Origin: Setoptus koraiensis
Lineage: Eukaryota; Animalia; Arthropoda
Reading direction: 5' to 3'
Assembly (NCBI GenBank): GCA_048013815.1
Contig: CM106585.1
Span: forward strand, 22,444,001-22,508,000
Length of the DNA: 64,000 nucleotides
The translations under genes were made by a program, and so were the position numbers. The notes under the pieces were generated by a model. It searched no databases, was not told where the DNA came from, and saw only the letters and a list, made by a program, of their open reading frames with translations. Of this stretch, positions 42,751 through 48,950 are shown one piece after another (the stretch's first letter is position 1; every line of letters starts with the position of its first letter).

Positions 42751-42928
42751 CTTCTCAACAGCTTATCAAGGTTTCCATTATAAATAATATACAAAATGCA
42801 CAATTACAGGCTTGACTATCGATCAGCTGCATGATTCCATCTTGTGAAAATGATTTTACACATTGGATATCCGAAAAGTTTCGAAAAACCACGCGGGGAA
42901 TTCAAAATCAAGTCAAAATTCAATTTTA

Positions 42929-42938
42929 CCGCGCGAAA
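42929..42938 (-). promoter_or_regulatory. E2F-like site in the divergent cnk/SDHAF4 promoter
   Basis: TTTCGCGCGG on the - strand matches the TTTSSCGC consensus; motif match only. Confidence 0.35.
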
Positions 42939-43034
42939 ATGAAGTGAATATAGCGAAAACGTGAGCATTTCTCGCACTTGGATAAATTCTCATTTGGATG
43001 AATTTAACTGTACATATTACGAAAAAACATCAAA

Positions 43035-43367
43035 ATGATTCTTGTCAGATGCACCATCAGATCCTGTCAGGTCTTCGAGCTGACTGTGAGAACAATATCT
43101 CGCTCAGCATCGTCTTCAGGATCCAAACCACCGAAAGAAGAAGAAAAAGTAGATGACCCAAGAACTCATTATTATCCCAATACCTCTGTCGGTATTGCAG
43201 AAAGATCAACCAAACCTGATAAAAAAGGTGTCCAACCTCTTCAAACGCCCATCCCACCGTTTCCCGGTGGAAAGAACCCAAAGACTGGCGAGGTAGGTGG
43301 GCCCGCAGGACCAGAGCCAACTAGATTTGGCGATTGGGAGCGTAAAGGAAGAGTTTCAGATTTTTGA
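43035..43367 (+). CDS. SDHAF4: Succinate dehydrogenase assembly factor 4
   Basis: 110 aa, mitochondrial-presequence-like N-terminus, C-terminal signature NPKTGEVGGPAGPEPTRFGDWERKGRVSDF. Confidence 0.95.
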   Translation: MILVRCTIRSCQVFELTVRTISRSASSSGSKPPKEEEKVDDPRTHYYPNTSVGIAERSTKPDKKGVQPLQTPIPPFPGGKNPKTGEVGGPAGPEPTRFGDWERKGRVSDF

Positions 43368-43433
43368 AGGTCAAGAGCCATTGGAATAAACGCACTCAGT
43401 ATGCTGTTGTATGTATTACTTTTTTTATCTTTT

Positions 43434-45545
43434 CTACGTAGAGGGGTATGCTCTGCGTGACAATTCTACCAATTCATCACTTTGGAAATCTCTCCTTATG
43501 GGATCGAGAAGCTTATTGATGTAATTGGATACTTGTATTTTCAAGTCAGAGTCCTTAATCTCTCCTTTGGCAAAGTCATTTGTCAAGATATCAAAGTCCT
43601 CGTATTTCGTCTCGTGATCCGATTTACTTACAGTAAATTCATTGAACAAAGGTAAAATAACATGTTGCACAAATGCAAGAAGACCGTTTTCACTCTTGTC
43701 ACCAGGCTCACATTTCGGGCAGCTGGCATTCTGAAGTTTCATTTTCACTACTTCTGGACTATCGAGCAGATCTATCTTCGAATCAACTTCAGATGCACTC
43801 ATTTTTCCACCGGATAAACCAGGTACCATGGGATTCATTAGATGGACTCTTTTGGGGTAGCCAATTGAAGGGAGATATTTTTCCGCATATGTAAAAATTT
43901 TTCTTTGGTCAACGCCTCCAAACTGAGCATCACAATCGAGGTACTGTTCATCTAAAGCTTGTAACAAAGGATACAGAAGACTACCAATCAGAGGGTGATC
44001 AGACTGCTTGACTACCTCGGCACCGGCTTTTTTCGCATCGTGTAGAGTTGTCTGGGACACTAGGCTAAACAAATCGCGACTGAATTCTCTACTTAGTTCA
44101 AATTCAGTTCCACGAACAAATTTAAGTTTTGATATTGGCACCTGTATTGATTTTAGCATACTAATTATCACCGCCTTATAATATTGCGTCCTGGCTTCAA
44201 GCAAGTCCCATGGTGCTTTCTGATTGTCCAAATATCCGTGTAGATCCGCGAGTAGAATTGTAACATGGCAATCTGCTCGTAGGAAGTCAGCGATCTTGGA
44301 CATAGGTACGAAATAAGCGACATGGGGACGTCCGGTTGTTGCTGTGCCCCAGTATATCCTAAGATTGCGCTCATGGAGGATTGTCTCCAGTGTTTCGCGC
44401 TGTAAAACCTCCTCTAATCTTCGAGTGATAAGTTTAGCTCGTTCCTCGAAACTGAGAAGTGGCTTATCGGGGTTGATAATTGTTAAAGAGGGTTCAGGTT
44501 TTTTGTTCGATTCTTTCTTTGGCTTTGTTGGATATGCTGCTTGTACCATCGCAATAAGATCTTCAGTTTCAAATTTACTTCTGATAGGATCGATTAACTT
44601 ATTTACGTAGGCTTCAACGCCCATCTTAATATCACCTGGATGAAGCAAGGATTTAGCAAAGTCATCTTCCAACTTATCATAATCCGCATAGTGTATGGGA
44701 CCACCATACTTTTCTAATCTATCCACGTCGAACTTTCCGAAGAGAGGAAAGATGATGTGCTTGACTAAAGGTAAAACCCCGTTGTCAACGATGTTGCCAG
44801 GTTCACAAAAAGCCTTATTGAGTTTCTTCTTAACTATCTTTGGTCCATCTAACAAGTCGATAATGGTGTCTTCTTCGGGCACAGTTGCACTTTTGCTACC
44901 TAGAAGACCCTGTATTATTGGATGCATCAGATGAAGTCTTTTAGAATAGCCGATAGCGGGTAGACTTTTTTCAGAGAAGGCGAAAATCTTTCTTTGATTT
45001 GTACCCCCTAATTGGGCATCAACCCCAAGGAATTCTTCATCTAGGGCCTGAAGGAGTGGATAAACCAATCCTCCCATGAGAGGGTGCTTGATTTGTTTAA
45101 CGACCTCATCTCCTGCGTCATTAGCAACGTCAATTTGTGTAGAACCGGCGAGCTTATAGAAACTCAACATTGCTTTACCGTCCAATTCTAGTTCAGTTCC
45201 TCGAACAAATTTCAACTTAGCTAGTGGAGCATCAATGGACTGTAGCATACTTGTAATGATTTGTTCATAGTAATCAGTTCGGATGCTAAGAAGATCTAAG
45301 GGTACTTTGTGGTTGGCTAAATGTCCATGCAAATCAGCTAATAGTATTTTAACTTCGCAATCGGCTCGCAAAAAATCTGCTATCTTCGACAAAGGTAAGA
45401 AAGAGCTGATATGAGGTCTGGACCCAATAGCCGTACCCCAGTAGACAGTGAGATTTTTTTCATGAAGAATCGTTTCCAAGGACTCCAGATCGATAAATTC
45501 GTGAAGATTCCTTGTTATTAGATTGACCTTGGTTTGGATATCCAT
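43434..45545 (-). CDS. YARS1: Cytoplasmic tyrosyl-tRNA synthetase, double-length (two tandem TyrRS units), no EMAP-II domain
   Basis: Single uninterrupted 703-aa ORF. Unit 1 is about aa 1-340 (45545-44526), then a ~25-aa K/P-rich linker, then unit 2 from ~44453 to 43434. Both units align to eukaryotic mini-TyrRS (ITRxLxE, YWGTA, KQxx[14 protein letters not shown], KLxDPIR, AYP). Confidence 0.96.
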
Positions 45546-46005
45546 TATCTGCTGTGATATGTTGCTTATATTTCCTAATTTTCTTTTAATAATTCATAAA
45601 AGATTTTCCAATAACTTGGTGGTATAGTGAGAAAAAATAAATATATTATAAGTTTTATCGGAACAAATCATCCCCTCCGTGGCCTGACATGTCCGGCTTT
45701 TTAGTAAATATTGCCACCTGTCTGTCACGCTTACTAAACTACTCCTAAACGCAGCGCAAATCTTTAGTGCTACTATTTGGCAGAAGCCTTCCCTGATCCA
45801 CTTACACAATATGAACCACGTGGACTAAATGAAGGCAAAATGTATGGAGGTTGATAGTTTTGTCCGCTAGGCGAAATCGAGAGTCAAACTTCGCATAAAT
45901 CAACTAAAGCAAAGCGACATCTCTCATAGAATTCTCTAGTTAAAGTTTGCGCCCGCCTGGTTTTCGAGTGCGACACTATCACTGGAAGGGATCACAAAGA
46001 AGCAA

Positions 46006-46014
46006 TTTCGCGCC
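46006..46014 (+). promoter_or_regulatory. E2F site upstream of PRIM1 (divergent YARS1/PRIM1 promoter)
   Basis: TTTCGCGCC about 160 bp upstream of the PRIM1 ATG; replication genes are typical E2F targets. Confidence 0.45.
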
Positions 46015-46170
46015 AACATGGCAAAAGCATAACATTTGGACCCGTGATACAGTCACCAGTATTATGATAAGAGGCACGGAAGAACTTATCTCTCCTAAAT
46101 GATTTATATCAAAGGGGCTTCTTTTATCAACTAGACATCGTATAAAAATAACTCGTCGGTCTTCTTAGAT

Positions 46171-47361
46171 ATGGACGATCTTAAAACTTATTATACGCAG
46201 CATTTTCCTCACCAACTTCTTTATAGGTGGATCAACTACGGTGATGGTGAGTTATATAAATGTGACGATAGTCTAATTTTTTTCTAATCTACATTAAAAA
46301 AAACAAACAAACTAATGGCAGCAATATTTCTCTAAACAGGCGTCAAAACTGATTTCTCAAGACGAGAGTTCTCTTTTACCCTGCCCGGAGATATCTACAT
46401 GAGATTCCTATCCTTTGATGATATACACGAGATGAAGAGTAGAATAATTAACAGGTGTCCGATAAAGATAGATATTGGAGCAGTGTATAACATGAAACCT
46501 AGAGATGCCAAGTTGAACCATGGGCTAAACTTTAAAGCAGAAGAACACGAACTTGTATTTGATATAGACATATCTGATTATGATGATGTGAGGAATTGCT
46601 GCAAGGAATCGCAGATGTGCCAAAAATGTTGGCCATTCATGAGGCTAGGTGCAAAAATACTACACCATATATTAACGAGAGATTTTGGTTTTAAACATCT
46701 GTTATTTGTATATTCAGGAAGAAGAGGGTTCCATTGTTGGGTCTGCGACAAAAGAGCTAGAATGCTATCGTCAAAGGCTAGGTCAGCCATTGCATCTTAC
46801 TTATCTCTCATAGAGGGAGGCCAGTCGATGGTTAAGAGAGTTACATTCGACCCCAGAAACAATCTCCATCCTCTGATAGAGGAATCGGTCAAGATAATAG
46901 ACACTGAATTTGATGATCTTATGTTAGTTAATCAAGATTTCTTAGGAACAGACCACCTTATGCAGACTCTCATAGACCTCTGTCTCGACATTACCATGCA
47001 AGAAAAATTTCGTGAATTGAAACTTCAGCATTTGACAACAACAACTGCTTGGAACCATGTCTTGAAAGCTTCAGAGGCAAGAAATAAGTTTAAGGGCGGT
47101 AAGCATACCCACTTCATCAAGGAGATCAAGATCCAACACTGTTTTCCCCGTCTGGACGTCAACGTCACTAGGGGATTGAACCATTTATTGAAAATACCCT
47201 TCTGCATTCATCCTAAAACAGGCAACGTCTGCGTACCATTCAGCATAGACACAGTTGACAATTTCGATCCTACCAAAGTTCCAAACATCAAAGATCAAGA
47301 AAATTGGAATGAGTCGAAAATTCTGCTGCCTTATTTGCAAGTGATGAAAGATTTTGTAGGT
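46171..47361 (+). CDS. PRIM1: DNA primase small subunit (3' end lost in the assembly gap)
   Basis: join(46171-46246,46340-47361); RREFSFTL, PIKIDIG, ELVFDIDISDYDDVRNCC, YSGRRGFHCWV, FPRLDVNV, HLLKIPFCIHPKTG. Confidence 0.95.
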
Positions 47362-47861
47362 NNNNNNNNNNNNNNNNNNNNNNNNNNNNNNNNNNNNNNN
47401 NNNNNNNNNNNNNNNNNNNNNNNNNNNNNNNNNNNNNNNNNNNNNNNNNNNNNNNNNNNNNNNNNNNNNNNNNNNNNNNNNNNNNNNNNNNNNNNNNNNN
47501 NNNNNNNNNNNNNNNNNNNNNNNNNNNNNNNNNNNNNNNNNNNNNNNNNNNNNNNNNNNNNNNNNNNNNNNNNNNNNNNNNNNNNNNNNNNNNNNNNNNN
47601 NNNNNNNNNNNNNNNNNNNNNNNNNNNNNNNNNNNNNNNNNNNNNNNNNNNNNNNNNNNNNNNNNNNNNNNNNNNNNNNNNNNNNNNNNNNNNNNNNNNN
47701 NNNNNNNNNNNNNNNNNNNNNNNNNNNNNNNNNNNNNNNNNNNNNNNNNNNNNNNNNNNNNNNNNNNNNNNNNNNNNNNNNNNNNNNNNNNNNNNNNNNN
47801 NNNNNNNNNNNNNNNNNNNNNNNNNNNNNNNNNNNNNNNNNNNNNNNNNNNNNNNNNNNNN
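47362..47861. other. Assembly gap (500 N)
   Basis: Exactly 500 N, a placeholder size; the true distance is unknown. Confidence 1.
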
Positions 47862-47899
47862 TATACAGCTAGCCTTTACTATACTATTTGTTGCTACAA

Positions 47900-48950
47900 T
47901 TTGTCAAGCGTGACTGATACAAACTTATGCCTATGCTCGTATCTCTCCTTCACAACGGCTGCTAGAGGCACAACTTGAGGAATTAACTTGAATGTGTATT
48001 GGTTCTTCATCGGTATCAGAATCTGCCACCGCAGATAATGAATTCGCTATATTGGTTAATATTGTTTTGCCTAATCGGGCCAGGGCTACGACGGCCACTT
48101 TCTCACACCGATTCTGATACCGAGGTAGCAACAAATAGTATTTGAAATAAAACTCTTCTGAAGCAGTCTAAAATGCCTTTCTGATGCTCTCGGGAGCATC
48201 TCTAGTGATATCTCAGAGGGTCTGAATCTTTAGAAATTTTATCGATTTATTGCAAAAAGTCGGGAAAAAACGGGGCTAGGTATAGACCCATTTTGCTCAG
48301 CTCCTCAAGCTGAGTCGATCTAGGCTAACGAGGACTCAATCTGAGTCTATCAGCTGGTTTGTAAGTTGGACATGAGAACTCCACTGTACATTTCGATTTT
48401 GTGCACAGTTTCGAACGTTCTCAACACTCGAACATCTCAACAAGCCTCACACCCAATATGCGGCGGCACGTCAGGGGCGGAAGCGGGCCTGAGTGCCGAA
48501 CTGACTTGAGCTTGATATTGTTCTAATATGGAATGACCTGGATATTCTCTTTCTTCTAGATGGGAGAATCTGTCTATAATCAATTGAAGTATCATCAGAC
48601 CCTCCAGTCTTAGGTCATCAATAGATAAGGTTGCGGCGACAAATGACATTCTTATAAGATCCGACAGATTGTTCACTAAAAAATTATATTTTGTATTGAT
48701 TTGTCGCGTTGATAGACGATTTAGGTGAGTCTGGTAGTAATTCGTATGATCACAAGTACCGTCATTTTCGCTTGAATATATTTCTATGAGACCTTTCAAT
48801 ACTGACATTGCTTAGATCCTAGTCGTCCATCTGGGCGATCGGCCTATCTGTTTCTCATCTGAGGCCTTAAATGACTCACCTAGGTCCTCTGCACCGTCTT
48901 TGTCATCTGGAATGTTCTCTAATTCACTTTTGCTGTTCAAGGTAGCCAGT
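47900..48950 (-). pseudogene. HEATR5 (HEATR5A/B, Laa1 family) pseudogene fragment
   Basis: PRWTTRI*A (canonical PRWATRVFA) and LSDLIRMSFVAAT...EYPGHSILEQYQAQVSSALRPA...EAC*; in-frame stops and loss of frame downstream. Best support is at 48430-48900. Confidence 0.75.

Follow-up and report, generated by a model that had tools for sequence, protein, structure and literature searches.

A double-length tyrosyl-tRNA synthetase with reciprocally decayed units in the mite Setoptus koraiensis

The window analysed here, a stretch of 64,000 nucleotides from the mite Setoptus koraiensis (GenBank assembly GCA_048013815.1, contig CM106585.1, positions 22,444,001 to 22,508,000), carries the gene for a tyrosyl-tRNA synthetase (TyrRS) of double length. 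The coding sequence occupies positions 43434-45545 on the minus strand; it is complete and intron-free and, according to the list of open reading frames (ORFs), runs from an ATG start over 703 codons to a stop codon. The gene specifies a single polypeptide that holds two complete eukaryote-type TyrRS units, and these have decayed reciprocally, unit 1 mainly in its catalytic domain and unit 2 mainly in its anticodon-binding domain. We consider it likely that the protein is a single-chain asymmetric pseudo-dimer, in which unit 1 acts as the anticodon reader and unit 2 as the catalyst. Such a molecule would offer one active site, would bind one tRNA and would serve as the housekeeping TyrRS of the cytosolic type.

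Domain architecture and reciprocal decay

Pfam analysis returned two matches to PF00579 (class I W/Y synthetase, tRNA-synt_1b; E = 2.5e-92) and no other domain in the 703-aa ORF; PF01588, the EMAPII-like C-terminal domain, had no Pfam match in this protein. A hidden Markov model (HMM) of mini-TyrRS found two complete matches, one at residues 1-346 and one at 361-703, and unit 1 begins at the canonical TyrRS N-terminus, its first residue corresponding to HMM position 6. In a phmmer search against PDB sequences the whole protein matched human YARS1 at E = 1e-139. With two PF00579 domains, a fold match (see below) and both signature motifs intact in unit 2, the gene product is a class Ic TyrRS of the archaeal/eukaryotic type. 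The two units aligned end to end with 52% protein identity over 343 aa; their codon-aligned DNA is 58% identical, with 35% at third positions, which is near saturation. Because of this low DNA identity, the repeat of units represents an ancient duplication and not an assembly repeat. The original prediction, which described one ORF with two TyrRS units too diverged for an assembly duplication, was thus borne out, and the motif strings quoted in it are all present in the sequence.

Unit 1 consists of a catalytic-like domain of Rossmann/CP1 type (aa 1-228; 44862-45545, on the minus strand like all parts of the gene), which displays degenerate ATP-binding motifs and retained tyrosine-pocket residues, followed by a near-canonical anticodon-binding domain (aa 229-346; 44508-44861). 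A Lys/Pro-rich linker that is predicted to be disordered (aa 347-364; 44454-44507) leads to unit 2, composed of a catalytic domain with canonical motifs (aa 365-590; 43776-44453) and an anticodon-binding domain that is eroded, with its fold retained (aa 591-703; 43437-43775). To score decay, one HMM was built for human-type residues 1-232, the catalytic part, and another for the part that binds the anticodon, in each case from ten canonical single-length animal TyrRS; in addition, changes were counted at positions invariant among 21 single-length animal TyrRS (110 catalytic and 26 in the anticodon domain). The catalytic domain of unit 1 reached 288 bits, compared with 450-479 bits for canonical enzymes, and was changed at 31 of the 110 invariant positions, whereas that of unit 2 reached 398 bits with changes at 5/110; the difference in changed positions was significant (Fisher p = 2e-6). 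The anticodon domains showed the opposite trend: 158 bits and three of 26 positions changed in unit 1, 112 bits and seven of 26 changed in unit 2, against 163-183 bits in canonical enzymes. Searches with phmmer against the PDB gave a concordant picture, as the human catalytic domain (YARS1 residues 6-244) paired best with unit 2 (365-603), the human anticodon domain paired best with unit 1 (229-347), and residues 10-350 of Leishmania TyrRS aligned best to unit 2. Aligning the halves to the human and Leishmania enzymes, a check proposed with the original prediction, therefore pointed to unit 2 for the catalytic domain and to unit 1 for the human-type anticodon domain.

The changes in the catalytic domain of unit 1 affect its ATP-binding motifs. 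In human-type numbering, the loop before HIGH carries T44I, T45G and G46S (within a 12-residue motif at aa 37-48), the fourth HIGH position is altered (Y52S), the Asp of GGVDQ is replaced (D187N; now GGTNQRK), and the KMSSS loop shows M223S, S224A and S226P, so that GSKSATV stands in place of the KMSxS loop around aa 216-222. Its anticodon domain, by contrast, keeps KAFCEPGN (244-251), the EKYGG hairpin (278-282) and HPGD (302-305). The catalytic motifs of unit 2 are intact, namely a 12-residue motif at 400-411, an 11-residue motif at 539-549 and GGKMSAS at 579-585. In its anticodon domain, three residues are inserted in KAFCEPG (an 11-residue segment, 606-616); the GG of the K(Y/W)GG hairpin has been removed by a three-residue deletion, leaving SKSDHETK at 640-647 (G284 deleted and G285H in human-type numbering); and HPGD has become KDSD (664-667; H305K and P306D in human-type numbering). 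Judged by its sequence, the anticodon pocket of unit 2 is lost and the fold of the domain is kept.

A full-length protein search yielded about 75 double-length TyrRS, which we sorted into two polarities by per-unit and per-domain scores. The term class A was used where decay affects the catalytic domain of the N unit and the anticodon domain of the C unit, and class B for the reverse polarity. Across all 37 class-A proteins, G281, G282, H302, P303 and D305 of unit 1 are invariant; invariant columns fall almost exclusively in the anticodon domain for unit 1 and in the catalytic domain for unit 2. These patterns suggest that the anticodon domain of unit 1 would be the only working anticodon reader and the catalytic domain of unit 2 the only working active site, while the catalytic-like domain of unit 1 likely plays a structural role as a dimer partner.

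Selection was assessed against a syntenic orthologue from a related species (Logan contig L001, protein P0001), which is 93% identical to the window gene in aa and 87% in nt sequence, has matching neighbours and aligns over all 703 codons free of indels. Ratios of nonsynonymous to synonymous substitution (dN/dS; Nei-Gojobori, dS ~0.8) amounted to 0.043 for the catalytic and 0.045 for the anticodon domain of unit 1 and to 0.10 for the linker. The catalytic domain of unit 2 gave the lowest value (0.019), and its anticodon domain the highest of the four domains (0.071), yet this domain too is constrained. All four domains are thus under strong purifying selection, which peaks at the putative working active site and is lowest in the eroded anticodon domain.

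The locus was recovered at 100% identity from public runs of several samples and studies, including a 3351-nt contig of run X2 that spans 42917-46267. In run X4, contigs colinear with the genome cover the gene at 43409-44750, 44796-45291 and 45441-45683, the last reaching into a 5′ untranslated region (UTR) of at least 138 nt (45546-45683, minus strand). This run behaved like RNA: a GT..AG joint removes 46246-46338 from the 5′ region of the adjacent DNA primase gene, and depth dropped to zero at the intergenic positions 45748-46128. The X4 contig at 43409-44750 crosses the linker (44454-44507) and reaches more than 240 nt into unit 1, showing that the two units are co-transcribed in one transcript. 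The Met residues flanking the linker are those at 333 and 415, with none in the linker itself. Since no Met lies between these two, unit 2 is not translatable as a separate complete protein from a start of its own.

Predicted pseudo-dimer and alternative readings

An AlphaFold2 model was computed from an alignment of the 37 class-A proteins (A2); a mixed alignment of class-A and class-B proteins (A1) staggered the units and was left out of folding. The model was confident (mean predicted local distance difference test (pLDDT) 87.8, predicted TM-score (pTM) 0.87), with disorder only at residues 345-358 (pLDDT <50). Foldseek searches against the PDB matched the single units to human mini-TyrRS (1n3l/7rou) at TMt 0.93-0.95, unit 2 being 58-59% identical to it in the Foldseek alignment. 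The whole model matched the L. major and L. donovani chains (3p0h-3p0j, 5usf) at TMq 0.70-0.74 over ~735 columns with 18% identity, compared with only ~0.45 for matches to one unit; the placement of the two units therefore agrees with the crystallographic pseudo-dimer. The two units of the chain are thus predicted to pack as a canonical TyrRS dimer, i.e. as an intramolecular pseudo-dimer; a structure prediction was among the checks put forward with the original prediction.

Half-of-the-sites reactivity, with one site working at a time in a symmetric homodimer, is classically illustrated by TyrRS. Each tRNA bound to the canonical homodimer contacts both subunits, one with its acceptor end, in the catalytic domain, and the other with its anticodon, on the C-terminal domain. 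The tRNA site of the TyrRS dimer straddles both subunits (PMC8319005). We propose that an ancient in-frame tandem duplication fused two such subunits into one chain, which would fold back on itself into the normal shape of a TyrRS dimer. After the fusion, one of the two cross-subunit tRNA sites would suffice. The site that was kept would combine the catalytic domain of unit 2, responsible for tyrosine activation and transfer, with the anticodon domain of unit 1, which would recognize G34 of tRNA-Tyr, and the complementary pair, the ATP site of unit 1 and the anticodon pocket of unit 2, would have been free to decay. Reciprocal decay would be expected because the fusion lifts the constraint that one sequence encodes both subunits. 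The decayed domains may still be under purifying selection because they form the dimer interface and the scaffold.

Several points weigh against this proposal. Unit 1 retains the first His of HIGH (His49) and the Lys of KMSKS (Lys222), as well as Tyr39, Tyr166, Gln170, Asp173 and Gln188 (all in human-type numbering), which we take to form the tyrosine pocket. Its active site therefore looks impaired and not obliterated, and its loss of function is something we infer. The reciprocal loss claimed in the original prediction accordingly stands as far as decay is concerned (31/110 and 3/26 changed positions versus 5/110 and 7/26), but not as a complete loss of function in unit 1. The contacts assigned to the anticodon domain of unit 1 are carried over from M. 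jannaschii and yeast TyrRS bound to tRNA, in which the His of HPGD and the hairpin's aromatic residue (KYGG) stack on the anticodon base G34 and the Asp reads it. Finally, the nature of X4 as an RNA run was deduced from its behaviour and not from the run record, and its coverage of the transcript is split over four contigs. Of the contiguous mRNA that had been suggested as a check, the passage across the linker was found, but a single contig over the whole transcript was not.

The strongest rival would be a partly symmetric fused dimer, in which both active sites work or unit 1 binds tyrosine/ATP as a regulatory or second catalytic site. This reading, which we regard as unlikely, gains from the retention of His49, Lys222 and the pocket residues and from the catalytic dN/dS of unit 1 (0.043), which is as low as that of its anticodon domain. 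Moreover, unit 1 is far less decayed here than in the sister group of Aceria-type mites (31 versus 69-84 of the 110 catalytic positions), and such an arrangement has been proposed for the double-length TyrRS of Arabidopsis (PMC9437257). Yet the changes in unit 1 cluster in ATP-binding elements (T44I, T45G, G46S, Y52S, D187N, M223S, S224A, S226P), and a second site would need the anticodon pocket of unit 2, whose hairpin and His-Pro are gone. Furthermore, the N unit is plainly dead in the Aceria-type sister group, so that selection did not need its activity.

Still less probable, in our estimation, is that the fused gene encodes a specialised paralogue and that an ordinary single-unit YARS1 elsewhere does the housekeeping. 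Single-length enzymes do exist in some acariform mites (Halotydeus, 531 aa; Leptotrombidium, 393 aa; Brevipalpus, 398 aa). However, a protein search with unit 2 alone gave no single-length protein above the generic 60-64% identity common to all animals, closer matches being only fragments of double-length proteins, and the trees placed no single-length sequence outside the named taxa beside the eriophyoid-type clade; both are weak evidence. In addition, the catalytic domain of unit 2 is the most constrained part of the protein (dN/dS 0.019), and complementary halves have been kept across ~35 clusters. An artefact, with two tandem genes or alleles wrongly joined in one frame, is effectively refuted and carries next to no weight: although database entries such as those of Gigantopelta (three near-identical units) and Acropora (broken repeats) resemble artefacts or very recent repeats, the units of the window gene are only 58% identical in DNA, the junction was assembled at 100% identity in independent samples, the same 703-codon frame persists without indels in a species at 87% DNA identity, and ~35 related clusters share architecture and synteny.

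Origin of the fusion and comparison with other double-length enzymes

Besides the window protein and P0001, class A comprises ~32 clusters of ~655-695 aa including Aceria tosichella (682 aa), the proteins of Tetranychus urticae (725 aa) and Panonychus citri (702 aa), and one JGI protein. A careful IQ-TREE analysis was run on 46 units, leaving out P0042 and all class-B rows to limit long-branch attraction. It recovered mirrored clades: unit 1 of the window protein grouped with the first units of the Aceria type (100/99), and unit 2 with the second units (100/99). The unit 1 and unit 2 clades were each other's closest relatives (97/99), with every single-length sequence falling outside, and the trees placed both units within arthropod TyrRS. 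The approximately unbiased (AU) test rejected a duplication confined to the lineage of the window (p = 0.0011). The head-to-head arrangement with the primase gene is common to L001 and the Aceria-type locus (L002/L003). Taken together, the mirrored clades, the AU test and the shared primase synteny indicate that the fusion arose once, in the ancestor of the window lineage and the Aceria-type mite clade. Since then, changed catalytic positions in the N unit have reached 31/110 in the window lineage versus 69-84/110 in the Aceria-type group.

The units of spider mites form a 100/99 clade with single-length Brevipalpus in the IQ-TREE analysis, and the spider-mite fusion is probably a second, separate duplication of the same polarity. 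A common origin of the N units of all mites was disfavoured (delta log-likelihood 21.5), yet the AU test did not reject it (p = 0.09). The replacement D187N in GGVDQRK is common to the decayed N units of the window lineage and the spider mites, and may represent a convergent early step in silencing the catalytic site. Among single-length acariform enzymes (P0077, P0101, P0125), those of Leptotrombidium (393 aa) and Brevipalpus (398 aa) lack EMAPII, which Halotydeus (531 aa) possesses. Loss of EMAPII is therefore separate from the tandem fusion and occurred earlier in the relatives of spider mites.

The closest functional parallel is the trypanosomatid TyrRS (3p0h-3p0j, 5usf; T. brucei), in which one chain likewise holds two units, each with a catalytic and an anticodon domain, as an intramolecular pseudo-dimer, a state that is predicted for the mite protein. 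In both, one putative active site and one anticodon site would come from different units, and the double-length TyrRS of T. brucei needs both units (PMC10157851). In the Leishmania enzyme catalysis is the task of the N half and anticodon reading that of the C half (PMC8319005), whereas the polarity is reversed in the mite, where the N unit would read and the C unit would catalyse. Moreover, the halves are 17% identical in Leishmania (PMC10157851) compared with 52% in the mite, and the decayed active site is much less eroded in the latter. Because both mite units nest in arthropod TyrRS and join at 97/99, and because the model is only 18% identical to Leishmania, the sequences point to a separate origin; on this basis the mite gene does not share common descent with the trypanosomatid gene and is a convergent, separate family. 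An independently evolved covalent asymmetric dimer of mirror-image polarity, as postulated by the original prediction, is thereby supported, and its suggested tree of the halves indeed placed the mite units within their own lineage.

Arabidopsis thaliana At1g28350 also has two TyrRS units fused in tandem and is listed as a pseudo-dimer (PMC7564348). It belongs to a separate lineage and, unlike the mite protein, reportedly keeps HIGH and KMSK-type motifs in both units (PMC9437257). Human YARS1 shares the mini-TyrRS fold with each mite unit and has catalytic motifs nearly identical to those of unit 2, but it forms a homodimer of ~528-aa chains with an EMAPII-like domain, in contrast to the single 703-aa mite chain with asymmetric halves and no EMAPII. 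The database TyrRS of Tetranychus, Panonychus and Aceria have the same architecture and polarity as the window protein, and the Aceria-type proteins are its orthologues by tree and synteny, albeit with an N unit that is far more decayed (~80/110 positions).

Class B, with a catalytic N unit and an anticodon-reading C unit, includes Malacostraca (shrimps, crayfish, crabs, an amphipod and an isopod), nematodes (filariae and tylenchids), Macrostomum and several further groups. The malacostracan (~965 aa) and nematode (~708 aa) proteins resemble the mite enzyme in being tandem fusions whose units have decayed reciprocally, one in the catalytic and the other in the anticodon domain; they differ from it in their trypanosomatid-like polarity and, for the crustaceans, in the presence of EMAPII and an N-terminal extension. 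In detail, malacostracan proteins measure ~880-985 aa, keep EMAPII and often carry an extension of ~85 aa, and nematode proteins measure ~700-740 aa (among P0043-P0061, P0063-P0079 and P0098). Their C units are changed at 62-78 of the 110 catalytic positions and keep KAFCEPG, the GG hairpin and HPGD/HPAD. A reciprocal pattern was found in every double-length lineage scored, in either polarity. A quick tree grouped the catalytic units of class B in one clade (96*), which dissolved when only catalytic columns were used. As convergent decay of the anticodon domain drives this grouping, it was rejected as evidence of a single ancient class-B origin.

Some entries, those of Gigantopelta aegis (P0002, 1151 aa with three almost identical units) as well as P0003, P0005 and P0006, contain two or three nearly undecayed units and are explained either by tandem fusion in the very recent past or by faulty gene models. 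Early decay is seen in P0005 and P0006, where 35-38/110 positions are changed in the C unit. It is conceivable, although we put this forward only tentatively and lean against it as a whole, that fusion and reciprocal decay took place several times independently in animals and in both polarities (eriophyoid-type mites, spider mites, malacostracans, nematodes and at least one further group), and that the window lineage is a slow-decay intermediate whose N-unit tyrosine pocket may persist as a tyrosine-binding or allosteric site and not as a mere scaffold.

The literature that was searched, with mites, eriophyoids, nematodes, yars-1 and tandem TyrRS among the topics, reports double-length TyrRS for trypanosomatids and plants only, although the original Leishmania description might mention animal sequences in passing. 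The animal proteins are public but filed as ordinary 'tyrosine--tRNA ligase, cytoplasmic'. The expectation that such an enzyme had not been described in arthropods was thus met by the search, whereas the architecture is not peculiar to one genome, being present in Tetranychus, Panonychus, Aceria and ~30 relatives in the databases. What appears to be new is the animal case, with its separate origin and opposite polarity; the working principle would be that of the Leishmania enzyme. If fusion and reciprocal decay did occur several times independently, these genes would constitute a repeated natural experiment, telling that in vivo a single cross-subunit tRNA site is enough for the TyrRS dimer. 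They would also line up as convergent cases at graded stages of decay, the number of catalytic positions lost ranging from 31 to ~84 of 110, and could help to address which residues carry communication between the sites, how fast a redundant active site decays and whether a retained 'dead' pocket takes on a new role. The annotation of the double-length proteins as ordinary cytoplasmic TyrRS would be corrected as well. The idea of an acaricide target proved weak, the catalytic domain of unit 2 differing at only 5/110 invariant positions. Because the putative working active site is almost canonical, the pest-control angle remains modest, and selectivity would have to rest on the interface, the linker or the altered second pocket.

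Genomic neighbourhood

Upstream, the TyrRS gene shares its intergenic space head-to-head with the gene for the DNA primase small subunit. Downstream lies a convergent DUF1674 (SDHAF4-like) gene, the stop codons being ~66 nt apart (43367-43434). The TyrRS protein ends 70 nt from the 3′ end of the DUF1674 gene, which leaves no space for an EMAPII-like domain. RNA-like contigs stop at 43391 and start at 43409, which implies 3′ UTRs of ~25 nt for the DUF1674 and TyrRS genes.

The 93-nt GT..AG intron at 46246-46338 that was seen in run X4 lies just upstream of the primase start codon (46399) and represents a 5′-UTR intron in a region that is otherwise intron-poor. The primase ORF (46399-47913) crosses a long block of N, an assembly gap within the gene, and this block accounts for the dip in GC to 0.29 at 46001-48000. 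No tRNA genes were found in the 64-kb window, and Rfam gave no matches around the TyrRS gene. Between the CNK-like and DUF1674 genes, a segment of ~106 bp (42864-42969) is multi-copy, with a depth ~8-10x that of its flanks in the DNA run X2 and a raised depth in X6. It showed variant contigs and loose ends on both sides, is not a tRNA, has no Rfam match and is probably a small dispersed repeat.

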